64,000 bases of DNA from contig CP075497.1 in NCBI GenBank assembly GCA_021613535.1, positions 4,526,001-4,590,000 on the forward strand, given 5' to 3'. The translations under genes and the position numbers were made by a program. Numbering within the stretch: position 1 is the first letter of the stretch; each line of letters begins with the position of its first letter. Shown piece by piece: positions 10 through 59,034 of the stretch. The notes beneath the pieces were generated by a model. That model saw only the letters and a list, made by a program, of their open reading frames with translations, was not told the DNA's origin and searched no databases. The stretch is from Adineta vaga (taxonomy: Eukaryota > Animalia > Rotifera).

Positions 10-2013
10 TGAAAACCAAAGATCAACTGATGGAATTCAATCTATATCATAAAAATACACATGACCCAATACTTATTTATCGTGACCGTTTATCCACACG
101 ATTGTATCGTATTTTATTAGTTTTTTCGATATGTATACCATTATTATTCATTAAAATCTAACAGTTAAATCGATTAGTGAGATCGTTGCAAACCCATCTA
201 ACGAAATATATGAAGTATTGAAAAAAAATATTCATCAACATTAAGATGTCCTTGTACACAAATGTCTATTCAATATGAAGATTTTATCAACATACCAATG
301 AGATATCATCAAATTTGTTCGAGTGATTTTATTCAACCATGGTGGTACCAAAGTATACTTCCTCAAAATACTTCAGATATGGTAATACCTAAATTTGTCT
401 CATTAAGACTGAGTTTATCTATCGCATATCTTTGACGAAAACATTACTTCATAGTAATCAATATGTAAGTAATATGTAATATGTGAACATTCTTATTCAA
501 GAATAAAAACGAAACCAACATATTCTCTCAATGAAAATAATACAAGATGTTATTGTGTTATTGATTCAATATGTAATTTAGACAATCGATCTGTTAGTAG
601 TGGTCTATATATTCAATTTGATTGGCAACTTGAAGGAATACATGAAGGTTACTCCATAGTTGATTCTGTATTAAAATCATCAATAATATGTTGGTTCAAA
701 ATCAATTGTATCAATAAGTTAAAACAACTTTTGAATGAGTCGAAAATTCCAATACCTTTCTCAATTACTCCATTTAATTCAATACTACCTAGTCGATATT
801 CTTCTGCAGCACCATTTGAATCTTATTTTGTTTATTCACTTATCAGAAGGAAAATGATTTTACATACATAATCATTATCAATATTAGTTTTATTGGTGGA
901 ATCAGTATTATTACTCATTATTAACATTATTTGTAAATTGGACATGGCGATTAAACATCTATGACAATGAATCAAATGATCCTGGAACTATTAATCGCGA
1001 AAGATTGAGTACAAGATTAAATTTTGTCATCTTATTCATTTTATTTTATACCTTAACTATATATTCAATGATCGCTCAAGATAGACCTATCAATATAGTT
1101 TTTTCCAATCCAGCTGAAAGTGATTATAAAAAGTTAATGATATTGTATTCAACACAACTTCAGTATCCTCGTCAGAAAATATCTGTTGAATACAAATATT
1201 TCACTGATATTAGTACAACGTTCCATCAAATTTGTTAGTATAGTATGGCGTGAGTGTGTGTTTCTTGATGAGTATTGCTATAATTATTCAAGAACTGACA
1301 TTCGTTCACGTGGTAGTATCTATTTTTTATTTCTTTCAACTTTATGTCGACTATCCCAAACAATCGTAAATAATGCTATTGATCAATTTCTCAATAAATC
1401 ATTCATCAATACTCGAGTCATATCAAAATCTGAATGTCCTCTTCGAATTAACGACACATTATTGAATGATAATGGAAGATGGATGTTCTTCCGAAACGCA
1501 ACGTAATTGCAGTGAATCAGGTGAAATTTATTATGATACTTCAGATAAGCGAATATTTGCACTACCTGGATGGAATATTGGATGTTCAGTAGTTGAAACA
1601 ATCTTACAATCAACACTTGAATGCTTTTATGATCGAGTATGTCTACAATCCTTACTATTCTATGCAACAACAGTCTTAAATCGATATCCCTATGAAATGA
1701 ATATAACAGCTATGGATTCTTCGAAAACAAGCCGTTTCAGACGTGATACTTTCATTCAAAACATAGTTGATGAATTATTCGTTGGAGAATGCAAAATAAA
1801 TAAATATTATTCATTATTTTATCATGCGTGTGCTCCAATTTATTGTTCATATACAATTCGTAAAGAAAATTATTATATATATACAACAGCAACATTGTTA
1901 GGATTATTTGGAGGAATAACTATTGTATTGAAACCAATTGTTCCAGTTTTCATAAAACTAACCTTCAAAATTATACATCGATACCAATGAAGTAGAATTG
2001 CTCCATCTGCATA
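10..2013 (+). pseudogene. Degraded member of an uncharacterised Cys-motif multi-pass membrane protein family that appears expanded in bdelloids
   Basis: Fragments in shifting frames carry repeated family-like motifs (LRCPC..SIQY..FI..YHQICSSDF near 241-330; LQYP..ISVEY..FHQIC in ORF 1005-1238; LECFYD, CAPIYCSY and LLGLFGG in ORF 1466-1990), broken by frameshifts and stops. Family assignment is from memory. Confidence 0.6.
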
Positions 2014-2247
2014 GTTTATATTTGTCGTCGAACAGTTTTATAAAAAATGACATAAAACTTTTCTTTATCTCTATGAACTTTTTCTACCGATATTCTCAAA
2101 TTTTCTTTCAAATATAATAATCAGCGTTGATGTAATAGATGTGGATATTTCTTACGTGTTTCAACTTCACGCTCATCCTTAAGCATCACTAATGAATATA
2201 AGCTAATCCTGACATTTTTTCTTTTTTTTACCATTTATAATAAAAAA

Positions 2248-2350
2248 TGTTGCTCTGGCAGATCAATGTTACCATCGATCCGCTTGATTTCGTCATCGCA
2301 ACATGTATTCTATTTTTTTTATATATACCTTTTGGTAAGTTGTAATAAGC
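2248..2350 (-). ncRNA. SL RNA: Spliced-leader RNA gene, type A copy 1 (SL-A1)
   Basis: Minus strand reads AAGTT|GCTTATTACAACTTACCAAAAG|GTATAT. The exon (2350-2329) is 1 mismatch from the bdelloid SL and is followed by a GT donor. About 103 nt with a structured 3' stem; PSE-like box 38 nt upstream. Confidence 0.88.
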
Positions 2351-2460
2351 AACTTTCTCCACGATCAAAGATCCACGCCCTCTAGCGTGTCTCTACACTT
2401 TCTCCTTTTTTCTTTCCTTTCTATACATCAGATATATACAGAATATCATTGAATAAAGTT

Positions 2461-2555
2461 ACTTACTACAACTTATACCAAGAGGTAAATGATCTTACTA
2501 AATCAAATTCATGTTGTGTAGATTGGTGATTAACACTGATCTACCAGAGCAGCAC
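2461..2555 (+). ncRNA. SL RNA: Spliced-leader RNA gene, variant type B copy 1 (SL-B1), possibly promoter-damaged
   Basis: AAGTT|ACTTACTACAACTTATACCAAGAG|GTAAAT, a 24-nt exon at 2461-2484. 3' hairpin GTAGATTGGTG-ATTAA-CACTGATCTAC. The PSE-like remnant is only 17 nt from the start (~22-nt deletion). Confidence 0.75.
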
Positions 2556-2664
2556 TCTTTCATTCAAAACAAAGCAAAGAAAAAACAATCTAATGTAATT
2601 TCGTTTCATTACGAAATAATTCGATGACTATTTTCGTTCGGGTAAAAAAAACTAAAAATGAAAT

Positions 2665-2674
2665 GTGTGCAGAC
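2665..2674 (+). promoter_or_regulatory. PSE-like snRNA promoter element GTGTGCAGAC (U2 copy 1)
   Basis: The same 10-mer lies exactly 38 nt before +1 in all three U2 copies (2665-2674, 3792-3801, rc 5102-5111). Related boxes lie 37-39 nt before five SL genes. Confidence 0.75.
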
Positions 2675-2712
2675 ATGGTGGAGAAAAGAGAAAGGAAATG
2701 TTGCAGTTAGTT

Positions 2713-2904
2713 ATCGCTTCTCGGCCTTTTCGGCTAAGATCAAAGTGTAGTATCTGTTCTCGTCGGTTTGAAAGCCGGCGCTGGTCTCATTGAGGCCAGG
2801 CTCTTTCAAGCAGATTTTTGGACATGGGCCAGGATCACCCGAGTTCACTCGGACCTGTGCCACGGATCGTCTCGACACTGCAGTGCCGTCGAGTTTGGTC
2901 CACT
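2713..2904 (+). ncRNA. U2: U2 spliceosomal snRNA, copy 1
   Basis: 5' ATCGCTTCTCGGCCTTTTCGGCTAAGATCAAAGTGTAGTATCTGTTCT matches U2. Branch-recognition GTAGTA, stems IIa/IIb, Sm site AGATTTTTGG and SL-IV loop ACTGCAGT are all present; 192 nt. Confidence 0.97.
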
Positions 2905-2929
2905 CCCGTTTTCCTTCGGGACAACGGGA
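2904..2929 (+). other. Conserved cUUCGg hairpin immediately 3' of U2 (also 4032-4057 and rc 4847-4872)
   Basis: TCCCGTT-N-TCC-TTCG-GGA-N-AACGGGA in all three copies; only the unpaired N/N position varies. Confidence 0.75.
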
Positions 2930-3319
2930 ATCATTCTAACAAAAACTTATAATGAAAATCAGCTATAGTAATTTCCCTACTTTATTCGATCACAAAGTCA
3001 ATTCAAAGAAAACGTCTCGGAACAAATAATAAAAGAGTGAAAGAATGTTGAACAGATACTTGTTCACTTCTAATATCCATCTTCATAATCGATACATCTT
3101 ATTTTGATAAAGTATCTGTTATTTAATCCTACTATGGTTACATCTCTTCCAAATAAATCCAGTAGATGAAATACTTATACTATTTCACTTCTTATTCTTC
3201 TACATCTTTTTATCAAAGGTATATATAGTAGTGTATGTATAAAATAACTTGTTCAGTTGACTGATTGCTAATGTATGAGGACGACTCTCGTACTATTTTT
3301 CATTTATATTTGATTAAAG

Positions 3320-3425
3320 TGTTGCTCTGGCAGATTGATGATGAACATCAATCCACATTTTATCGTCATCGCAACCTATATTTGTATTCATATGGATATA
3401 TACCTTTTGGTAAATTGTAATAAGC
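3320..3425 (-). ncRNA. SL RNA: Spliced-leader RNA gene, type A copy 2 (SL-A2)
   Basis: Minus strand AAGTT|GCTTATTACAATTTACCAAAAG|GTATAT (exon 3425-3404); 106 nt. PSE-like GTGTAAAGAC 37 nt upstream (rc 3463-3472). Confidence 0.85.
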
Positions 3426-3556
3426 AACTTTCTTCTTTTCCAAGGAGAACGCCCGCTCTTCTGTCTTTACACTTTTCTCTTTTTTCTTTCTTTTACATAC
3501 ATCAGATATCTACGGACTGGAGAAACATCGTTTTCTTCACATCATCGACGAAAGTT

Positions 3557-3665
3557 GTCTATTACAATTTACACCAAGAGGTCAATGATCTTACTAGATC
3601 ACATACATGTTGCGATGACGATAAAATGTGGATTGATGTTCATCATCAATCTACCAGAGCAGCAC
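3557..3665 (+). ncRNA. SL RNA: Spliced-leader RNA gene, variant type B copy 2 (SL-B2)
   Basis: AAGTT|GTCTATTACAATTTACACCAAGAG|GTCAAT, a 24-nt exon at 3557-3580. GATC-TTACTA-GATC hairpin, then a full 3' stem. Confidence 0.8.
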
Positions 3666-3839
3666 TTTAATCAAACTAATATAAATGAAGCAATAGCAAT
3701 CATCACTCGTAGTTTCGTAACAGTGTATTTTTTCATCACGATATTACGAAAATCAATCAGTGACTCATATCGCATCAATTAGAAATGAATGGTGTGCAGA
3801 CGTAGTGCAGAAAAGGGAGAGGAAATTGTGATCGAAGTT

Positions 3840-4032
3840 ATCGCTTCTCGGCCCTCTCAGGCTAAGATCAAAGTGTAGTATCTGTTCTCGTCGGTTTGAA
3901 AGCCGGCGCTGGTCTCATTGAGGCCAGGCTCTTTCAAGCAGATTTTTGGACATGGGCCAGGATCACCCGAGTTCACTCGGACCTGTGCCACGGATCGTCT
4001 CGACACTGCAGTGCCGTCGAGTTTGGTCCACT
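3840..4032 (+). ncRNA. U2: U2 spliceosomal snRNA, copy 2 (stem-loop I loop variant)
   Basis: Identical to copy 1 except the SL-I loop reads CTCTCA instead of TTTTC; flanks are diverged. Confidence 0.96.
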
Positions 4033-4871
4033 CCCGTTCTCCTTCGGGATAACGGGAATCATCTCACCAAAAAAATAATGAAAAAAGAAAATACCTTATA
4101 ACGAACTTCTTTTGTTAAGAAGTACAAATTAGTATCATAATTGCTCTTCGTCCATTGTTTTCTTTTCCATTAAAGCAAAGTTCGTTACCGTTATGATAAA
4201 AATGAAATTCAACTGTTCAAGCCTCTTCTCGAATCATATTTAATGACAAATATGGATCAATGAATGTAGAATGTCATTCTTCACATAAGAATATCTACAT
4301 ATCGACTTACTCAATGAGAGGGTAGAGAGCGGAAGTATCATTTCAGTGTTCTTAGATAAAATATCTCGCGATTTCTTGTTCAAATAAACATCTTGAAAGA
4401 CCAGCTAATTTCAGAAATATACTTGAAAATTCTATTAACCAAAATTCATCAATAAACTTCTAATCATCATTTTGAATCGAAATGTAGGAACTTCGAAGGT
4501 AGATTTATAATGTATCGTAGACGTGCTGTTAAGACATGATTATCTTGACAGATCTAACTTTGATCATTGTAATATAAATATGATTGAATGTTGTTAATAT
4601 ATATGTAGTGCTTTCCAGTCATTTGTGTTTCAATGCTATGTAGATAATGAGTTTTTCTCTCGTACTACTTTCTCTCATGTGTCTATTAAAGGGAGCTTAG
4701 GAAGAGATAAGAGATTTCACAAGCTTCGAACGGAATCATAGCGATGATCTGTTAAAAGAGCACTATTCTGCATCTTCATTTCCTACTGCAACAAAGTAAG
4801 AAAATAAGTATATCTGATTTTCATTATAAGTTTTTGTTAGAATGATTCCCGTTGTCCCGAAGGAGAACGGG

Positions 4872-5063
4872 AGTGGACCAAACTCGACGGCACTGCAGTG
4901 TCGAGACGATCCGTGGCACAGGTCCGAGTGAACTCGGGTGATCCTGGCCCATGTCCAAAAATCTGCTTGAAAGAGCCTGGCCTCAATGAGACCAGCGCCG
5001 GCTTTCAAACCGACGAGAACAGATACTACACTTTGATCTTAGCCGAAAAGGCCGAGAAGCGAT
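4872..5063 (-). ncRNA. U2: U2 spliceosomal snRNA, copy 3
   Basis: Reverse complement of copy 1, with near-identical flanks. Confidence 0.97.
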
Positions 5064-5220
5064 AACTAACTGCAACATTTCCTTTCTCTTTTCTCCACCA
5101 TGTCTGCACACATTTCATTTTTAGTTTTTTTTACCCGAACGAAAATAGTCATCGAATTATTTCGTAATGAAACGAAATTACATTAGATTGTTTTTTCTTT
5201 GCTTTGTTTTGAATGAAAGA

Positions 5221-5315
5221 GTGCTGCTCTGGTAGATCAGTGTTAATCACCAATCTACACAACATGTATTTGATTTAGTAAGATCGTTTACCTCTTCGTA
5301 TAAGTTGTAATAAGT
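5221..5315 (-). ncRNA. SL RNA: Spliced-leader RNA gene, variant type B copy 3 (SL-B3)
   Basis: Minus strand AAGTT|ACTTATTACAACTTATACGAAGAG|GTAAAC (exon 5315-5292). PSE-like ATGTGCAGAC 39 nt upstream (rc 5355-5364). Confidence 0.8.
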
Positions 5316-5644
5316 AACTTTATTCGATGATGTGAAGAGAACGATATTGTTTTAGTCTGCACATATCGGACGTATGTAAACAAAAGAAAAGTGACGTCAC
5401 TAGGATATGATGTCATCGATCGACTGCTTGTTTAATTAATACAATGATCATGAATGACTATTGTGCATTCTCAATGAGAGTAATGATAAGATGTAGAATT
5501 AGAGATGGAGTTTTACGTAGAAAGTGTTGAATGTTAGGAGATCTTGTGTTTGGGGAAAACCTCTGATGTGATAGTTGAACGATTGTAAAGTGTAAAGTGT
5601 AGAGACACGCTAGATGGCGTGGATCGTTGACTATGGAGAAAGTT

Positions 5645-5749
5645 GCTTATTACAACTTACCAAGAGGTATATATAGAAAAAGATAAAATACATGTTGCGA
5701 TGACGAAATCAAGCGGATTGGTGGTAACACTGATCTGCCAGAGCAACAT
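5645..5749 (+). ncRNA. SL RNA: Spliced-leader RNA gene, type A copy 3 (canonical bdelloid SL)
   Basis: GCTTATTACAACTTACCAAGAG (5645-5666) followed by GT equals the published bdelloid leader GGCTTATTACAACTTACCAAGAG (recalled) minus its first G. About 105 nt; PSE-like GTGTAGAGAC at 5597-5606, 38 nt upstream. Confidence 0.93.
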
Positions 5750-8409
5750 TTTCGTTTAAAAGAAAATGAATAAAATTGATATCTATCGACCAAGGAACAA
5801 TGTGTTTGAATGTAGGTAGTATCGACTTCATTGCTATATCCTAATATCTGATAAAAGGTTAAAGACCATAAAACTTTATAGATAAGATGTTGATCGAACG
5901 ATCTCTGTTTAGTTTTTTTCCCTGATATCCATACACATACTTGACTAGAACAAGTGTATTTTCAATGAACTCAAAATGATGTGCTGAAAACCTACTCAAT
6001 ATTCAAATGAAATTCCATTCCAATATCATCAATAGAGTAAAAACTTGGGCAATGACATGAAGCGAATTGTTCCGATCTCACAAGCACGCATTTACTTATT
6101 TGAAGTATTAATCGGAAAGAAAATAAAAGATATTGCTAATTAACTTATTACACTTCACTTTTATTCATGTTCGGTCTTAGCTTATGGATGAACAATCTGC
6201 ATAATTTACATAGTTTAAATGAACACTTCGTCAGGTCTGTTTAAGTCTCTATTTTTTTTTTCTTTTTCCATCTTTGTAAACTATTGATGAAAGGTGAACT
6301 TCCTTGTCTTTCTTTGTCTTTTGATGGAAATAAACAACTAACGAAGAAGATATAAACAGAACAGAAAGTAATTGGATGTTCATGATCAGTCTTTACTCCT
6401 CCGGCGTTAGTCCATAAGAAGCAGCATCGAAATGGCTATTTCAGAAAAAATGTGTTCTTAACTCAATTCTGTTTTTATTATGATTATTGTTTTTTTTTCT
6501 ATAAAACTTTGCTAGTTTAATTAAACTCGTTATCTTATTCTCTCTTTATTTCTTTTATTGCTGATGGTTCATTATGTTATTAGTATCTTTTGTTTGTTCT
6601 TTATATGTCATTGTTGATAATATCGATCGTGAGTTATTTAAAATCTCGAATAAAACTTTATCAAATCACTAAAAACAATGATTATAACAGAATTTTTATA
6701 TTCATTTTACAAATATGTAATTCCTATTACTTTACTACCCAGTTTCTTATTTTTTGAATGAAACATTTCCAATTTATCATCAGCTGTTCAATAGATGAAA
6801 CAACACGTAAAACACGATCTTCATATCTTTGTTATAAAGAGTATCTTTTAAAATGATCGAATATTTCATGTAATAACTTAACTAAACAAAGATGAGAGTG
6901 AGTATAAAGATCACCCAGTCCAAAGGGAAAAAAACAAACACTTAGTACAAGTATTCGAATAATTTCTATGTCTGCACGTGAAATGTCGAAATTCTAACCA
7001 TTTGTATTTTACTAGCTTATTATTGAATAAAGATTTATATTGATTAGTTATGAAAAGAACTATTGCAACATTCATATGAATGATAGAAAGAAGAGATCAA
7101 ATGAGTTCTAAGTTTTTAGTAATTACATTAACACAAGCAGATCTCGAAGATGGTTAAGAACGATTGTTTGACTTGTTATATTGTCAATATAAGCTCCAAT
7201 TACGACTATATTTGTAATCAAATAGAAAAGAAACGAAGTGTTTTGCTTCATTTTGCCTTAAGCATAGCATTGTATTCTTGTTATTTGACATATTTATTAG
7301 ATCTCAAAATACTTTTAATCAAATAACTACGAAATACTATCTCGTCATTTTCTTCTAGCAAACCGATAAACATAAATACACTTCGTATCGTGAGAAATCT
7401 TTAGGATTATTTAATAAATCCTGAGAAGCATTAGTAGTGGTTTATCATGTGTTGAAATATTAGAACCTTTTATAGTTAAACGGGCCATTTTATTTTCTTC
7501 TGATAGAACAGGCACTCATCAACGTATTTTGAAGAGTTTGCAAATAGCAATTCATTGTATGTCTTTTTCTATTATATCTATAGATGTATGGATGTCTGCT
7601 AGCTTACAAACGAGTATTATATCTTAGTAAAACACGAAACTAATCCATGCCTACAGCTTGTCGATGCAATTTATATTAATAACTCTGTATATGAATATAG
7701 AATAGAAGTTTGAAGCAAAATAAAATAAAAATAGATTTATGATACTCTTCTGCAGTTTCTCATATCTAATTCAAGAGAAGCAAATGCCAGTTAGAAAAGA
7801 AAGAAAAAGATAAATTTCGTGGTTTTAATTGCAAATAAATATGGAAGAGAAGAGAAAGAAACAACCTTGATTATTTTAATGTCTGAAAAAGGACAGCTGA
7901 AGAAAGAGAGAGAGAGAGATAAGAACACGCATGAACGCCTTCGAAACAAAGTACCTTTAAAGAATCCGTTGTGAGTGCATCCTTTTCTCATTTATCTCGG
8001 CCTGGATAAAGAATAAAGAAAAAAAGAAGCAAGATTTCGACTGACAAAAAGCAAATATATTTTTGGCACTTTGTCGATGCTTTCATTCTATTCTTTAATA
8101 GAGAGAGAAAGACAAGACGAAAAAACCCAATGCCTAGATCAATATATTTTACTGATTGAAGTCGATTGGTGAGTATAAAAGAGAGAGAGAGAAAGAAAGA
8201 AAGATGATATCAAAAGTAAGAAAAAATGATTATGTTTGCGGTTGTTTTATATCAAATAGAAGAAAGTTTTATATTCAAGTGACAGCTGTTGCGTTGATTG
8301 ATTTTTATTAAATTTTATCTACTTATTACATACGTATATACTTGAATCAATCCGAGACTTATTCATTTATTAATATTTTAGAAAAAGTTCGATAGAAATA
8401 AATAATATA

Positions 8410-13860: not shown

Positions 13861-15319
13861 ATGGCACATCTAAAACGATTTAATTCGACAAATCGTCGTT
13901 GTACAACATTATTTCTTGATAAATTTGCATTTCGAGATCAAGTATAAATATGTCTGAAAAAAAAACTTTTTTAATCTCTTTTTTGTCTTTTTGATTGTAT
14001 AGTATGGATTTATTAAAGATCCTCGACACGAAACAGTCGATGAATTTACATCGATTAATGCTATTTCATCAGCTGACAATGAAAAAAGTAGAGAGAGAAT
14101 AAAAAAAGAATTCATAACAAATGAATAGTTGTGTTTTATAGCTGATATTGAATTGGATAAGATGAATACGGAAATAAGTGAGATGTTACGTGGTTTAGAA
14201 TTACGAAAGCGTTCATATTATGTTAATATGCCGAATCTTATCTATGTTATTGGTATGATAAATTATTCGAGTAATTGTGAATCAAAATGATTAATGAGTA
14301 TCATCATAGGTGGTTATCTATTCGATCCATTTCGAAAAGAACGTCGACCACCCGATAATGATTGGAGATGGGATATTGAAGAAAAAAAGTTAGAAAAAAT
14401 ACCACCGATACCAGGTTATGGTCGAATTAATTTTGGAATTGCAGCTAATAATGGTAAAGCAATAGTTTTAGTATTGACATTTTTGATTGTAGATACGTTA
14501 TTAGGAAAAGTCGTTGTTATTGGAGGAAATACAATATTAAATAAGTATATTATTTCTTAATATAAATTTATTGAGCATATTGAAGATATGTAGACCAACC
14601 GATACTTGTTATGTCTATGAACAAAATGATGAACAATGGCAAATGTTACCATCTTTACCAAATCCATTATGTGGTAAGAAATCTTCATCTATATGAATAA
14701 TTCATTTTGACTTCTAGGTTCTGCTGTGACACTTGATGAAAAAGATTCTTTGTATGTTTTTGGTGGTTATGATTTACTTTCTGGTAATGTTCAATTTCGT
14801 AATGATTTTTTACAACTTGAAGATTTAACATCCAAAAAGTCTAAAAATCAATTTAATTCTTTTTTTCTTCGTATAAAATCGATTTGATCTGTTTCATTCA
14901 GATGGACAAAATTAAAGAATACATTCAATATGGAAAATAAATCTCAAACAGTTCTACCACGAGCACGTGCATTACTTTTAGCTTGTGGAGATGATATTGT
15001 TTCACCTGATGGTGGTCTATTTGCTTGTGGTGGTTATCATAAATCACCTACAGGTGAATTAATTCCTGTCCCAGAAATCATATGTTATGATAAATCAACA
15101 AAAGATTGGATTTTTCTATCGAGTATTCCAAATCTTAAGAAATTGAATATTTTCTCTGTTGACAATAATATATTGATTATTTCGGATAAAATTAAAACTG
15201 AAGAAGATGATGAGCTCATTCCAATATCGAAGTATGATTTTATGAATCGAAAATGGTTAATGATAGATCAAAAAGAAATTGAAGAATCTCCAATTGAAAA
15301 AACAGAAACAGATCAATGA
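13861..15319 (+). CDS. Kelch-repeat protein, multi-exon
   Basis: Spliced model starts MAHLKRFNST... and carries Kelch motifs IYVIGG, VVVIGG, LYVFGG, LFACGG with downstream Y...W. Confidence 0.75.
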
Positions 15320-49025: not shown

Positions 49026-50459
49026 TTAATCACGAATTATACCACGAATCGGTTCACCTGGTAGTTTTATATTCTTATCTATAGTTACCAATTTTTCATT
49101 ACGTACAACAAATATTCCATTGACAAGTACGTGTACTATTCCTTGTGAAGGAAGTTTTGGTTCTTCATAAGTAGCACAATCTTTTACTGTTAATGGATTA
49201 AATATACATAGATCTGCTATTGCACCGATACAGATACGACCTCTGATTTTCATTTGTAACGAAGCACTTTCTAATCGCTGTGCGGGAAAAAGAGACATTT
49301 TTCGGATAGCTTCCATCAATGTGATCAGATGACATTCACGAACATAATGACCAAGAACACGTGCACAAGAACCAGCTGCACGTGGATGACCACGAAGTGC
49401 ATCACTACCCATCAAAGTAATTGGACTTTGAAGGCAATCTACAACTGCTTGTTCAGGTATAGAATTAATAATAATCAATCCACCTTCTTTACGATATCTA
49501 TTGAAACTATTGATATCTAATTGCTCTTTTGTATTAACATAGGTCAAACTATTATAACCAATACCTAATTGTTCTTGCCAAAGCTCATCATTGAATAATG
49601 CCGAATCTATTGAACTACAACCAGCTAGATACGGATCTACAATACAATGATTTTATTACTACTAGTTTCTGTATTTAATTGAAGTAGGCTTACAAAATTC
49701 TGTTGTGATATCCATTCCATTCTTATGAGCATCATGAATAAGTTCGAGAGCCTTGTTGGTTGCCGATAAACATGTACTATGTATATGGCAAACATTAATT
49801 GCAGCTTTTGTACATGCACCTAGAGCAAGAACTTCTTGTAGAGCAGCTAAGCTACCATTTTTTTCTTGTGCACCAAAATGACGCATATGAACATGACAAC
49901 AAACATTATATGTTTTTGCTAAACGAAAACATTCAACAATTTCCCATCGTGTTGCTGCTGGAACATAATGAATACCAAAACCCATTGCCATTGCACCACG
50001 GCGAAGACCATATTCCAATTCTTTTGTAATCTGATCAATTCTGTCTGGTTGTAGTGCTGCTGGTGAATCACTTTGTGGTAAGAAACCAGGTGGATGATCA
50101 AATACTTTCATTCGTACCTGAATATGTCCAATACCAACTCCATAATTGACTAAAGTTTTATTTTCTCTTTCAGCATACCATTGATCAATATCATTGGTGC
50201 CAACTTCTAATTCAAATACTGATGTCACACCATCTTGACATTTCAATGCATAGTACTCATCTGTATGTTCATGAGAATGAACATCGATAAAACCAGGACA
50301 AAGAATTAGATTTGAAATATCAACTTCAACATGTCCTTTTAGAACTTGTTCACTAATTGCTACGATGAATCCGTTACTAATACCGATAGATCGGATAGCA
50401 TCAAGATTTGTTTCAGGATCCATAACTCGACCATTGAGAAAAACGAGATCATAAATCAT
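49026..50459 (-). CDS. Bacterial-type amidohydrolase (N-acyl-D-amino-acid / D-glutamate deacylase-like), one 57-nt intron; HGT candidate
   Basis: YDLVFLNGRVMDPE..LDA.R.IGI; PGFIDVHSH metal motif; HVHMR; EF|YPY across intron 49637-49693; GSD..GHPRAAGS.ARVLG.YVRE; EAIRKMS.FPA. Confidence 0.9.
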
Positions 50460-50596
50460 CTTTTCTTGCTTAAAATAAGATTTTCTAGAAAAGAAAAATA
50501 AATAATAAAAACAAAACAATCTAAAGATTGATTATAACATATTAACACTTGATCAATATATACAAAAAACGGCAAAAAAAAATACAAAAAACGAGT

Positions 50597-52709
50597 TCAA
50601 TCTAGTATAACAATTTCAGAATGTTCTTTGAATTTCTTTGAAGGTGATCGTTTTTGAACAATAGATGAACTATTCTTTGTTGTTTCTCTTTTGTAATAAT
50701 CATATAATGTTCTTTTAGTAGATGTAATCTGTTGTTGTTGTTGTTTTGATCGTCGTCGAGGAATAAGTGTTTGGACCTGACGTTCTTCTATGATTGTAAT
50801 TGATTGCGATTCTTGAGTATCATGCGAATCAAGAATAGTATAAACATCTGGTTCAGTTACAGAAGTTTGTGAAAGAGACCTATCTCTTTTCGGTGGAAGA
50901 GATGCTGTTGATAGAATTGTTACTCTACTACTGTTCAGTGAATCTTCATTTGTTTCTGTTTCATTGATTAATTGTTGTACAGGAGATGCAGATCGAGATA
51001 CTAAAGTTATTGAAATAAAAAAAAACACTTTTTCAGATAGGAAATGTTGGAAAATTTACATGGAGGTGGAAGAATATCGACAATATCATATTCATATTCA
51101 TCACATTTCTCATGGAATGGTTCGACAACAAGTTCTATTTCCGCTTCGATTTCTTCTCGATCATCTTCACTGTTGGATTTTTCCGATGTTTCGATATTCT
51201 CTTCTGATTCCAATTCTGGATCAATTTGAGAAAATTCTTGTAAAATCTACATTGAAAGAAAACGAGAAATTTATTTCATAATTTCATATTCAATTACTTT
51301 TTCTGTTTTAATCACAGCTTCACGTTTATTTTCATTCAATGTATTTTCAAGCTCAATACTATTCGATGCTGGATCATATTGTTCAATACTAATAAAATCA
51401 AACTATTGTAAACTAATAAGAAATATTCTTATGAATTTTACTCGAAATCTTCAGGAAGACGACTGCTCATAATATCATTAAAATCTGCCATTCGTCGATT
51501 TTTAACTTTTGTACCAATCAATTTAAATATTTTTTCCGCAAGAGTTTTTCGGTTATCCGCCCTAGAGATCCATATGCATTGATTAATAACCAAGAAGTAA
51601 AACAATGTCTTACTCGAGATTTAGTTTACATTTATCATTTGTTTTTTCTACAGTTTGAAGAACATCATAGAATGAAGGTAAATATTTTGTTTGATTTATC
51701 ATTTCTTCAACAGCTTGATGTATTGATGGATAAAAAATATCATTTTCTACAAAATAACGATAATATCGAGAAATAAACTTTCGAAGAATTGAAACTTACC
51801 GGAAAGAGTTATAGGTTGATCAAGAATTCTATTTGCTGATGCTGATTCATTATTCAATTTTGTAAGTTTAGCATACATCTATATCAAATATTTCTGATGA
51901 TATTTTTCAAAAAAATCAATAGCTAGAAGTTACTTCACAAGCTTGTTTTTTTAGACTTGATTCGACTTCGTACAGATCACAATGTTCCATTTCATCTAAT
52001 GACATGTCTTTTTCTTCTAATTCTCGAATTAATTTTGATAAACTAGTGAGTCGTCGTTGTAATTTATTGATTTTCTTCTCTCGTTTTAATTCACATGGAT
52101 TCGGTGTTATTTGTGTTTCGACATTTCTGAGAGGTTGACGAGCTTCATCAAATATTGTACAAATATCATTACAAGAATTTAGAAGTTGTTCAACTGTTTG
52201 TTCTTCAGTAGTCGATGACGTTAAATGTACAGCAGTGTTAGTAGAACATTTCGATGATATAATTACAGTCTTTCTACTTGTTGATAATGTTGTTTCAACT
52301 AAATCGGTATCTTGAATAGAACTAGAAGTTAAAAAGAATGAATAGTAAATCAATCGTTTATCGTTCCATCGTACCCTTTTAATTTGATGCTATGCTTTTT
52401 TAATTGTTGATCGAATGAAGATAGTAATGTGAAATATTTTGTCGATTTATCATTTTTATTGAACAAATCATGAAGATAATCGAATGATGATTGAAAATCT
52501 GTTGAACATAAATAAGATGATGATGCTGCATTAAAGTGACGACGAAGTTTATTTTCAAGAATATTGATATCTTTTTCATGTGCAAGAACATGATTAACCG
52601 ATAAAAGAAACTAAATAAGAAGAAGAAAAAAAATCATTATCTTACAAAGAAATCTTTAACACACTTGTTCAAATTGAATTTTAATATTATTAAATATTAC
52701 TTCCGTCAT
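50597..52709 (-). CDS. DAXX: DAXX-like histone H3.3 chaperone
   Basis: Histone-binding-domain-like IRELEEKDMSLDEM...YEVES.LK; F.LIG.KVKNRR..D; acidic tract; terminal SIM EIVILD*. Confidence 0.8.
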
Positions 52710-53781
52710 CTAGAACGAAAATCACGAAAAACTCAATTATTTATCATGATAATCATTCCAGAAAGTGTGATTAATTGTATACTGTATTAAACTGATATTT
52801 CTATATCTATAAAAGATATCAAACTTTACAAAGTTCAGTATATTCTCACATATAATTCCAATGAATGCGTTATTTGTGATCCAACATAACTTATATCGTT
52901 TACTGAATTGTATATTAGATTTCGTTGAGAACTGTATAGTTGATCTTTATTTTGATAAAAGTAAAACAGATATTTCTACATAGATGAAATAGTCTTTATT
53001 CTTACATTTATGATTATCTTGTAAGTTCATAGAGTATATTGAACGATAAAACCGAAATTTTATTCACGATCAAGGTAGATAACTAGTAATCGATATTGAA
53101 TATCATCATATTTATATTTGAATTAATATTTTCACTGTATTATACATAAGAACAGAATTATATCCCATAAGTTTTCTTTGAAAAGTGAGCGTTAACTAGA
53201 TGTTATTTCTGATATGATTCTATAATTGAGTCTTTCTCGTTATTATCACGATTATTTAATATATGAAAAGAAAGAATTTTATAATTAACAGCTCAGAAAG
53301 TATTTCGTTTTCAGGCCGCAATCGCCTCTATGATGGACGCAGGCATGTGTCCAGAGCTCGACTGGATCAAACGCAAATTAACTCATCACCGCTGTTGTTT
53401 TATAGTACAAAAAAAAAAGAAATACGATTCAACTTTAATAAATAAATGAATGAATGACCAAATACAATAAACATTCAACTATCCATTCATTGAATCGTTA
53501 TCAGACTATTTCGACTTTTCAATGTCCTCTATCTTTCTATATATTTGTTTTCACGAAATAAATTATTTTTGAATAATTACTAAATTATTTTAAATATTTC
53601 ATTATTGAAAATTGTCTATTTATATTTTCTAACGACATCTTTTCAACTGATATTAGAATATCAACCAATAAATCGAAATAAGTATTTATTTGCTGACTCA
53701 TCGTTATCGTTTCTTAAATCGAATTTACATTACATACATACATCTTTTACTTACAATTATATCGTTTGAAACGAATCAATC

Positions 53782-55944
53782 ATGGTTGAATTACACGATG
53801 TAGAAATGAAAGAAGCTGATCCATCAAATGGATCAAATTCAACAACAGTAACAAAAGATGACAAAAAAGATGCGAATACATTGACACTTGATGGTTTAAT
53901 TTAATTACTTCCTATGATTTTTTCTTCATCTTAAACATTTCTTTCATTATCAATAGATATTAAAGAACAAGTTCGTACAATAGAAAAAGCTGTGAATTCC
54001 AAAGAACCTCGTTACATTCTTCGTGTTTTACGTGGATTAGCATCAACACGAAAACGTTTAAATGAAGATATCATTCGACGTTTGATTTTATTTTATTATG
54101 GTTCGAATTCAAGTGAACGAGAAATTCTTCTTGGTTTCGCACAATCGGTTGCTCAAGTACATTCTTCTTTTTACAATACAAATTCATTCTTTCTTTTATG
54201 CCTCATTTAGTCGATGGATGTTGATATGGAAAAAGGTAATAGTTCACCAGCACCAGTAGTTAGTGAAAAACAATTGGTCTCACGTCCTCATACATCTCGA
54301 ACACGTGCTGCTTCATTGCCAGAAGTTGATCTTTATATACATTTAATCGTTCTTCTTTATCTCATTGATCGAAATTCATTAAAATCGGTAATTGAAATAC
54401 CAAAAAGAAGATAGATCTCGTCGTTTATTTACATAGATTTTGTTATTTTTATTAGGCTTTAGATTGTGCTAAACGTTTAGTAGATAAAACAAGTGTTCTC
54501 AATCGTCGAACGCTTGATTTATTATCAGCAAAATGTTATTTTTATTATGCTCGTATCTTTGAATTAAACGGTATGCTTGATTCTATTCGACCGTAAGTTT
54601 TCTACGTATTCCGAACTATATCATTCCTAAAAAAAATGTATTGTTCTGTTTTTTCAATTCAGATTTTTACATAGTCGGTTACGTACAGCAACATTACGAA
54701 ACGATTTCGAAGGAACAGCTGTATTAATTAATTTGTTATTAAGAAATTATCTTCATTATAATCTATATAGTCAAGCACAAAAACTTGTTCTTAAATCAGT
54801 CTTTCCGGATCATGCATCGAATAATGAATGGGCTAGATATCTTTATTATCTTGGTAACAATCTTTTAAGAAAATTAATAGATTGCAAAGAATATTTACGA
54901 ACCATTTAGGTCGTATACGTGCTATACAATTGGAATATACGAAAGCTCATCAACATTTGCTAACAGCTATTCGAAAAGCTCCACAACAAACAGCAATTGG
55001 ATTTCGACAGAATGTATATAAGATGTTTGAAATGATAAATCATCTCTAGAATTATTATTTTAGGCTCATAAATTTCTTATTACCGTGGAATTATTACTTG
55101 GTGACATTCCTGATAAAGCAACATTTAATAATCCTCAACTTAAACGTTCATTAGATCCATATTATCAATTAACATTGGGTACGTGAGAACAATTTGTTTG
55201 TAGTTGTCTCGAAATAATTAATTGTGTTATTTTTAGCTGTTCGTGCTGGTGATTTAGGTCGATTTAAAGAAGTTCTTGAAACTTTTTCTGATCGATTTCA
55301 ACAAGAAAAAACTTGGTCATTAATTATTCGGTTAGTAAACCGAGAAGATTTCAAAGTTATGGATTTGTTTTTTTTTATCTATAAAATATAATTAGATTAC
55401 GACATAACGTCATCAAAACAGGTATCAAAATGATTAGTTTATCCTATGCGAAAATATCATTTTCTGATGTGGCTCAAAAATTACAACTTGATTCACCTGA
55501 AGATGCAGAATACATCGTCGCAAAAGTAAGTTTAAATGTATGAATCCGAATGTGAACACAAATCAATGATGTTCTATTCTTATTCTTAGGCTATTCGTGA
55601 CGGAGTAATAGAAGCTAATATTAATCATGAACAAGGTTATGTACAATCACGTGAAATCATTGATGTTTATACAACACGTGAACCAATGAGTGCATTCCAT
55701 CAACGTATTGAATTCTGTCTTAAAGTTCATAATGAAGCAGTTAAAGCAATGCGTTATCCACCAAAGAAATATAATGAAGATTTAGAAACTGCTCAGGTAA
55801 GATTATATGAAATGATTGATCTATTTGACTCTTTCATTTGATGATCGTACTTTTGCTTTTTGCTTCTCTTAGGAACGACGAGAACGTGAACAAGAAGAAT
55901 TGGAATATGCAAAAGAGATGGCCGATGATGAAGATGATTTTTAG
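53782..55944 (+). CDS. PSMD3: 26S proteasome lid subunit Rpn3
   Basis: [63 protein letters not shown]. Confidence 0.96.
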
Positions 55945-56084
55945 GAAAAAAAATAAGCAGAAGAACAAAATTAAACATAGACTTCATCATGTCTTTTCAT
56001 TTGTTACTTTTTTTTTTCTTTTAACTTAAATAAAATCGAGATACTCGAAAAATAGATAAATTTAAATTCCAATCCTTTTTCTAG

Positions 56085-59034
<2,950 letters not shown>

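Follow-up and report, generated by a model that had tools for sequence, protein, structure and literature searches.

A second class of spliced-leader RNA genes, with a 24-nucleotide exon, in the U2 cassettes of the bdelloid rotifer Adineta vaga

A 64,000-nucleotide stretch of the Adineta vaga genome (contig CP075497.1, positions 4,526,001 to 4,590,000; hereafter the window) contains a second class of spliced-leader (SL) RNA genes, marked by a 24-nucleotide (nt) exon and by an intron start of its own. This class, which the initial annotation had proposed from the window under the name SL-B, comprises 12 genes in the whole genome; it stands as a gene class and is new to the literature that we searched. 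Concerning its role, we lean, at a little under an even chance, toward SL-B being a low-use, redundant and partly decaying paralogue that is kept in a cassette with the U2 small nuclear RNA (snRNA) gene. We see no sign that SL-B would be reserved for operons.

The SL RNA of bdelloid rotifers was reportedly described by Pouchkina-Stantcheva and Tunnacliffe in 2005. In the literature searched, which did not include that original description, a second bdelloid leader and a 24-nt rotifer leader are not reported, and the SL-B exon string is absent. Bdelloids are described with a single 23-nt spliced leader, and the rotifer entry in a review consists of one leader, listed as GGCTTATTACAACTTACCAAGAG (PMC3795323). 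All 22 genome-encoded positions of this leader can be aligned with SL-B; the extra 5' G of the published form is not encoded in the genome and is probably cap-derived.

Window cassettes and the genome-wide census of SL genes

Nine small-RNA genes occupy window positions 2245-5751, on the chromosome-scale contig C6, in three cassettes. Within each cassette, an SL gene with a 22-nt exon lies head-to-head with an SL-B gene, and a U2 snRNA gene follows. The SL-B start is 110-330 bp from the 22-nt-exon gene, on the opposite strand, and U2 is 130-180 bp downstream of the SL-B gene. Cassette 3 is inverted relative to cassettes 1 and 2. SL RNA genes were scored with a covariance model, R1, built from 52 distinct copies (24 pairs; 97.9% of cells paired), and U2 genes were called by Rfam RF00004. 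The proximal sequence element (PSE), an snRNA-type promoter element 37-40 nt upstream of +1, was read with the consensus RTGTRNAGAC. We name SL classes by intron start, A1 beginning with GTAAATATCC and A2 with GTATATAT; SL-B is the third class. The features of the cassettes are as follows.

2245..2350, minus strand: SL RNA gene, class A2, cassette 1 (C6:4528245-4528350); exon 2329-2350, ending CCAAAAG; intron GTATATAT; R1 113.9 bits
2389-2398: PSE GTGTAGAGAC of the A2 gene, cassette 1; 38 nt from +1
2461..2557, plus strand: SL-B copy 1; 24-nt exon 2461-2484; intron GTAAATGATC; R1 68.5 bits
2665..2674, plus strand: PSE-like element GTGTGCAGAC of U2 copy 1; 0 mismatches, 38 nt from +1; motif class common to SL genes
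2713..2908, plus strand: U2 snRNA gene, cassette 1; Rfam RF00004, 141 bits
3317..3425, minus strand: SL RNA gene, class A2, cassette 2; 22-nt exon 3404-3425, CAATTTACCAAAAG; R1 108.1 bits
3463-3472: PSE GTGTAAAGAC of the A2 gene, cassette 2; 37 nt from +1
3557..3667, plus strand: SL-B copy 2; 24-nt exon 3557-3580; intron GTCAATGATC; full 3' domain; R1 93.2 bits
3840..4036, plus strand: U2 snRNA gene, cassette 2; Rfam 134.9 bits; PSE 3792-3801
4868..5063, minus strand: U2 snRNA gene, cassette 3; Rfam 141 bits; PSE 5102-5111
5219..5315, minus strand: SL-B copy 3; 24-nt exon 5292-5315, ending ACGAAGAG; intron GTAAACGATC; R1 68.6 bits
5597-5606: PSE GTGTAGAGAC of the A2 gene, cassette 3
5645..5751, plus strand: SL RNA gene, class A2, cassette 3; canonical 22-nt exon 5645-5666; intron GTATATAT; R1 124.9 bits

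The three 22-nt exons, each followed by GTATATAT, and the three 24-nt exons with a 2-nt insertion were read here just as the initial annotation had described them. A loose leader pattern gave 5 matches in the window against 0.82 expected, and none of 100 shuffles reached 5.

The exon of all 12 SL-B genes is homologous to the known rotifer leader: apart from one insertion of 2 nt, it can be aligned with the 22-nt leader, and a GT donor comes directly after it. The two extra bases are TA or CA and lie between TTA and the CC or CG of the leader. The donor reads GTAAA in 11 of the 12 genes and GTCAA in window copy 2. The introns of window copies 1-3 start with GTAAATGATC, GTCAATGATC and GTAAACGATC, respectively, and continue with TTACTA[A/G]ATC; GATCTTACTAGATC is a stretch of the SL-B intron. 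Seven exon sequences occur among the 12 SL-B copies, compared to one dominant exon in about 40 genes of the major class. SL-B-type leaders have the 3' ends TTACACCAAGAG, TTATACCAAGAG and TTATACGAAGAG, and further variant exons in the SL family are CCAAAAG, CGAAGAG, TTAAAAC and CAAATTACC.

All three intron classes have a short hairpin right behind the donor, each with letters of its own (ATCC/GGAT, TATC/GATA and GATC/GATC). The initial annotation had credited SL-B with a hairpin of its own; the GATC/GATC stem is perfect only in copy 2, whereas in copies 1 and 3 a G-to-A change weakens it. The classes also have a closing stem and a long hairpin in common. This conserved 3' domain consists of the closing stem GTTGC/GCAAC with GATGACGAAA and CCAGAGCAAC and of the long hairpin, which covaries, with both-sided changes at 7 of 11 pairs in the alignment of SL genes. 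It is present in window copy 2 and in most SL-B copies on C5. Window copies 1 and 3 and the copy at L001:4321 lack 14 nt including GATGACGAAA and score 67-69 bits. The alignment-based fold places the extra SL-B bases in the loop of the first stem-loop, enlarging that loop from 3 to 5 nt. When sequences of the major class are folded singly, a UUACC/GGUAA stem spans the donor, and the two extra bases would break it. Under either predicted fold, the local structure at the SL-B donor is altered.

The genome searched was the A. vaga assembly of 100.8 Mb in six contigs. By pattern searches, the 22-nt leader was found in 62 genes and the 24-nt leader in 12; these 12 are all true genes in two clusters, and the reversed-pattern control gave 1 match. 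One cluster is on C6 (locus L001 and the window) and the other on C5 (loci L002-L004). The R1 model found 86 SL-like genes, which fall into the three intron classes. Class A1 is the major one, with about 40 copies (counts below rest on 42 copies read) that carry the canonical exon followed by GTAAATATCC and score 114-131 bits; they lie at C5:9.88-9.93 Mb, at C2:8.68 Mb and dispersed, mostly as head-to-head pairs. The pairing of a 22-nt exon with GTATATAT, which the initial annotation had taken as type A, does exist, but as the minor class A2 (11 copies read, 104-125 bits) and not as the main class, which has the GTAAATATCC intron and is located elsewhere. SL-B scores 67-112 bits over its 12 copies as compared to 114-131 for the major class. 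A2 and SL-B were found only together, at C6:4.520-4.532 Mb and C5:10.913-10.935 Mb.

Divergent SL-like genes with 21- and 23-nt exons (62-89 bits; L037-L047) are dispersed in the genome, at C3:5966214-5966558 (C3:5966214 and C3:5966453), C3:4975623-4975730, C5:10664627-10664976, C3:6910429-6910537, C6:5166884-5166992 and C4:11308178-11308517. Their exons include a 21-nt form, CATTTACC, the 23-nt forms TTACTGCAAGAG, CAATTGTACC and AAAAACTTTCC, and a further 23-nt exon that has diverged strongly. A good promoter element is present in several of these genes, and partial decay is seen in this group. SL-B is thus not a lone second class; several length variants exist, and among them it has the most copies. 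A genome search for retro-copies of the 22-nt leader, followed by a base other than G, found none, and C5:6051403, considered as an SL-B-like retro-copy, was rejected as a chance match without the upstream leader bases.

Two other arrangements were seen among the SL genes. A non-LTR (long terminal repeat) retrotransposon lies inside an SL RNA gene, from L002:4936-10000 to L003:1-129 (C5:10,915,936-10,921,129). Its ORF1 has a zinc knuckle, and its ORF2 has AP-endonuclease (apurinic/apyrimidinic) and reverse transcriptase domains. The 5' junction is about 18-20 nt into the SL intron, past the exon, and at the 3' junction a poly(A) run is joined to the remaining SL intron. The same junctions occur at three more SL genes (L006:462(-), L039:166-275 and L041:162-258), and the flanking 5' and 3' SL pieces belong to different intron classes, as if the element carried an SL 5' end along with it. 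It looks like an SL-gene-specific LINE (long interspersed nuclear element). At L001:4651-6182 (C6:4,522,651-4,524,182), where the A2 partner of an SL-B gene would be expected, there is an open frame of 501 codons with matches to the immunoglobulin I-set; a leader-like exon of 22 nt, TTAACAAGAG, runs straight into it with no GT intron in between.

Linkage to U2 and duplication of the cassette

SL-B is closely tied to U2. In 11 of 12 cases, the next gene downstream of SL-B is a U2 gene, at a distance of 130-180 bp. The genome has 19 U2 matches, 15 of which score above 126 bits, and 12 of these 15 are in the two SL-B clusters. An orphan gene stands beside the cassette at both the C5 and the C6 locus, with 69% amino-acid identity between the two; a length-limited search found no relative of it outside A. 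vaga. In the window this gene is at 1472-1942 (+), tail-to-tail with the A2 gene, and its C5 counterpart is at L003:3850-4299 (-). The two clusters therefore lie in anciently duplicated contexts. Three cassette subtypes can be distinguished, two of which occur on both chromosomes, and their spacers are 0.8-1.0 identical within subtypes, far above the identity of the orphan gene. Such similarity suggests that blocks were duplicated or exchanged between the C5 and C6 clusters. The difference between the 22-nt and 24-nt exons is indeed kept in all three window units, as the initial annotation had stressed, but mostly as a result of block duplication of the entire cassette; the three units are thus not independent witnesses, and their agreement is not independent conservation.

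One cassette, at L004:3248-3672, has U2 head-to-head with an A2 gene and no SL-B between them. Here the spacer that elsewhere separates SL-B from U2 runs directly into the proximal promoter of A2, which means that SL-B was deleted together with the A2 promoter element. The C5 cluster is flanked by a DNA-PKcs gene; three contigs of other bdelloids anchored on DNA-PKcs contained no SL gene and no U2 gene. Three open reading frames of the window match only the NCBI genome record.

This fixed linkage could also mean that the SL-B unit acts as DNA, as an enhancer or spacer for U2, or as a decoy RNA for proteins of the SL ribonucleoprotein. The position and orientation of SL-B upstream of U2 are the same in 11 cassettes, the SL-B-to-U2 spacer is fairly well kept within subtypes (identity 0.89-1.00), and the U2 promoter begins some 200-260 bp past the start of SL-B. 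Nevertheless, the U2 genes on C2 and at C6:5.17 Mb have other neighbours and work with them, and one cassette does without SL-B. We consider such a role very improbable.

Constraint, decay and expression of SL-B

Signs of constraint and of decay are both present in SL-B. A perfect PSE is located 39-40 nt upstream of four SL-B genes (window 5315(-), L001:4321(-), L003:3282(-) and L003:7402(+)), and the same PSE at the same spacing is found upstream of the major SL genes and of U2. L003:3282 and L003:7402, both on C5, keep every conserved RNA element, one of them with a weakened small hairpin. When the two cassette subtypes that have diverged most are compared, identity is 0.88 in the SL-B exon and 0.85 in intron bases 1-30, against 0.55-0.60 in the spacers; the value is 0.73 for both the SL-B 3' domain and the A2 gene, and 0.95 for U2. 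The two SL genes of window cassette 2 are nearly alike in their 3' halves, with differences at only 2 of 59 aligned columns, and strongly different in their 5' halves, which points to recent gene conversion within this inverted pair. Despite conversion in the 3' halves, the difference between the two exon types was kept in 11 of 11 pairs.

The lesions are numerous. An intact and correctly spaced PSE was found in 5 of 12 SL-B genes versus 40 of 42 genes of the major class (Fisher p = 1.3e-4, with the reservation that SL gene copies are not independent of each other, which limits copy-count statistics). A 22-nt promoter deletion in four of the 12 leaves the PSE 17 nt from +1, and three others have a PSE with two mismatches. 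Three copies have lost 14 nt including GATGACGAAA, a motif near-invariant in all other SL genes, those of another bdelloid included, and CCAGAGCAAC is mutated at L002:4820. Altogether, 8-10 of the 12 SL-B copies have at least one lesioned element (promoter, donor, RNA element or score).

The window copies illustrate these defects. In copy 1, the PSE reads ATATACAGAA, and the 22-nt deletion has moved it from the usual 38-39 nt to only 17 nt from +1; the 14-nt deletion takes out the conserved CGATGACGAAAT motif; this copy is probably impaired. Copy 2 has the unusual donor GTCAAT, and its PSE, ATCTACGGAC, is correctly spaced at 39 nt but mismatched at 2 positions. Copy 3 carries the same 14-nt deletion as copy 1 behind a perfect PSE, ATGTGCAGAC, at 5355-5364, 39 nt from +1. 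Judged by these letters, two of the three window copies appear to be impaired, and a conserved motif is missing from the remaining one.

Logan contigs of four runs were aligned to window positions 50300-56299, which include two candidate operon junctions, and contain spliced introns on both strands, so these runs are RNA. The letters of neither the 22-nt nor the 24-nt leader appear among the 17 of 21 loose ends listed for that region, an outcome that counts neither for nor against SL-B. The contigs of the DAXX-like gene have 51 unplaced letters at the 5' end. Contigs matching the bL36m and TRAPPC2 proteins were of genomic type only and gave no mRNA 5' ends.

A metagenome scan for the SL-B exon returned four loci (L017-L020) and no trans-spliced SL-B transcript. 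L019 and L020 were dropped as bacterial chance matches. L017 and L018 are copies of one contig from another bdelloid, on which an SL-B-like exon lies head-to-head with a normal SL gene; this SL-B-like gene has no PSE, scores 41.8 bits and folds no better than shuffles (z = -1.2). The contig bears four SL-type genes (L018:1050-2442 and 14330-14448), whose introns are unlike those of A. vaga and whose 3' motifs are the same, and a 5S rRNA gene, with no U2 within 14 kb. Scans of viral contigs found no rotifer SL genes; their single match was a chance one inside a giant-virus coding region.

Our preferred account of these data is as follows. SL-B would be a paralogous lineage of the bdelloid SL RNA gene, in which a 2-nt duplication turned TTAC into TTACAC, later TTATAC in some copies, and lengthened the leader to 24 nt. 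The first 30 or so intron bases of this lineage would then have diverged, and the lineage would have been copied within a three-gene cassette (A2, head-to-head SL-B, then U2) that now holds most U2 genes of the genome at the paralogous loci on C5 and C6. The best-kept SL-B copies have the PSE 39-40 nt upstream, the AG/GTAAA donor, the closing stem with GATGACGAAA and CCAGAGCAAC, and the covarying hairpin. Since they keep every element of working SL genes, they are probably transcribed by the snRNA machinery, and can probably give a low-level 24-nt leader to ordinary AG acceptors. Such a leader would be a redundant variant of the main one. Individual copies, including at least two of the three in the window, would be under relaxed constraint and decaying, and SL-B would persist mainly by travelling with U2, partly refreshed by gene conversion from its partner.

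Some points weigh against this account. Recent shared ancestry or gene conversion, and not selection, may be why the exon and early intron are better conserved. Neither SL-B RNA nor the 24-nt leader on an mRNA was seen among the RNA contigs examined. In addition, the sole SL-B-like exon outside A. vaga sits in a decayed gene, which argues against a long-lived functional class.

SL-B genes could instead be non-donating relics, the 2-nt duplication having arisen in a copy that was already redundant. The lineage would survive between A2 and U2 by selection on U2, perhaps also on A2, and by block duplication, and mRNAs would receive no appreciable amount of SL-B leader. We regard this as possible but somewhat doubtful. 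It would account for the lesions in most copies (promoter deletion in 4, two-mismatch PSE in 3, 14-nt deletion in 3, the mutated CCAGAGCAAC and the GTC donor) and for the low R1 scores. The concentration of 12 of the 15 good U2 genes in SL-B clusters, the L004 cassette that lost SL-B and kept U2, the partly decayed 21- and 23-nt variants elsewhere in the genome, the decayed gene of the other bdelloid and the silence of the searched literature on a 24-nt rotifer leader all agree with it. It fits less well with the four copies that have a perfect PSE at the right distance, with the complete RNA elements of L003:3282 and L003:7402, and with an exon and early intron better conserved than the spacers between diverged subtypes. 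Furthermore, none of the 11 pairs was homogenised to two 22-nt exons, although conversion is visible in the 3' halves.

Candidate operons and known spliced-leader systems

What defines nematode SL2 is its placement on the downstream genes of operons, along with RNA features of its own, and it differs from SL1 along its length. The initial annotation had raised SL-B as a possible counterpart. SL-B resembles SL2 in being a separate and more variable SL gene class beside a dominant, uniform one; unlike SL2 with respect to SL1, it is set apart from the main leader by no more than an insertion of 2 nt. Its greater variability relative to the main leader, as found here, is a pattern that is equally expected under relaxed constraint.

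Rotifer operons are not reported in the literature searched, yet operon-like gene pairs do exist in A. vaga. The window has two candidate junctions, DAXX-like to amidohydrolase and PSMD3-like to PI4KB, both with tight same-strand spacing and AG acceptors. On C4, a two-exon COX7C and an intronless TRAPPC2 stand head-to-tail about 150 nt apart (L026:888-1790; C4:7,334,465-7,335,367), each with a polypyrimidine-AG acceptor a few bases before the ATG, an arrangement that fits an operon-like cluster. The window amidohydrolase (49026-50531, minus strand) is of bacterial type (Amidohydro_3 / Amidohydro_1), with counterparts 82-89% identical in A. ricciae, A. steineri and Rotaria and bacterial relatives at 40-50%; its AG acceptor is 27 nt before the ATG and about 110 nt past the stop of the upstream DAXX-like gene.

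These pairs, the separate gene class with its own intron start and more variable exon, and the retention of the exon difference in 11 of 11 pairs are what would speak for a distinct leader like SL2, serving downstream operon genes or another gene set or condition. Against it stand the heavy lesions and the low number of intact copies (about 2-5), given the many genes that such a leader would have to serve. The SL gene family is heterogeneous, with several odd-length variants of which SL-B is one, and the retention of SL-B is equally explained by its place inside the U2 cassette. The three leaders of the chaetognath Paraspadella gotoi, which were seen on transcripts, show no operon specificity; chaetognaths are the closest phylum studied, and the Gnathifera also hold the rotifers (PMC12460157). 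On these indirect grounds, an SL2-like role is improbable in our judgement. It also appears unlikely that the 24-nt leader is trans-spliced to any defined subset of mRNAs, such as those of operon-like downstream genes or of desiccation-recovery genes.

The bdelloid SL RNA itself is the closest known system, with which SL-B shares the alignable leader, the GT donor, a gene of about 105-110 nt and, in part of its copies, the intact 3' domain and promoter element. SL-B departs from it in the two extra bases, in a first base that is A and not G in most copies, in the first 30 or so intron bases and in the link to U2. With P. gotoi, A. vaga has in common several leader variants per genome, SL-B being known here from genes alone. 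SL genes are linked to other small-RNA genes in several groups, as in the SL-5S rRNA repeats of nematodes and other SL-using organisms. The A. vaga cassette is similar in joining SL genes to an abundant small-RNA gene with the same promoter grammar, but its partner is U2, and two different SL genes stand head-to-head.

The census of 86 genes, with three intron classes, 21-, 23- and 24-nt variants and the U2 cassettes, should be useful for mapping trans-splicing in bdelloid RNA-seq data, in which a search with the canonical leader only would miss variant leaders, if these are used. If SL-B proved to be a second leader with a defined gene set, rotifers would have a two-leader system that arose apart from nematode SL1/SL2 and is physically coupled to U2 cassettes. 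It would be a second, independent origin of the SL1/SL2 type of division of labour, and the question of rotifer operons would become directly testable.

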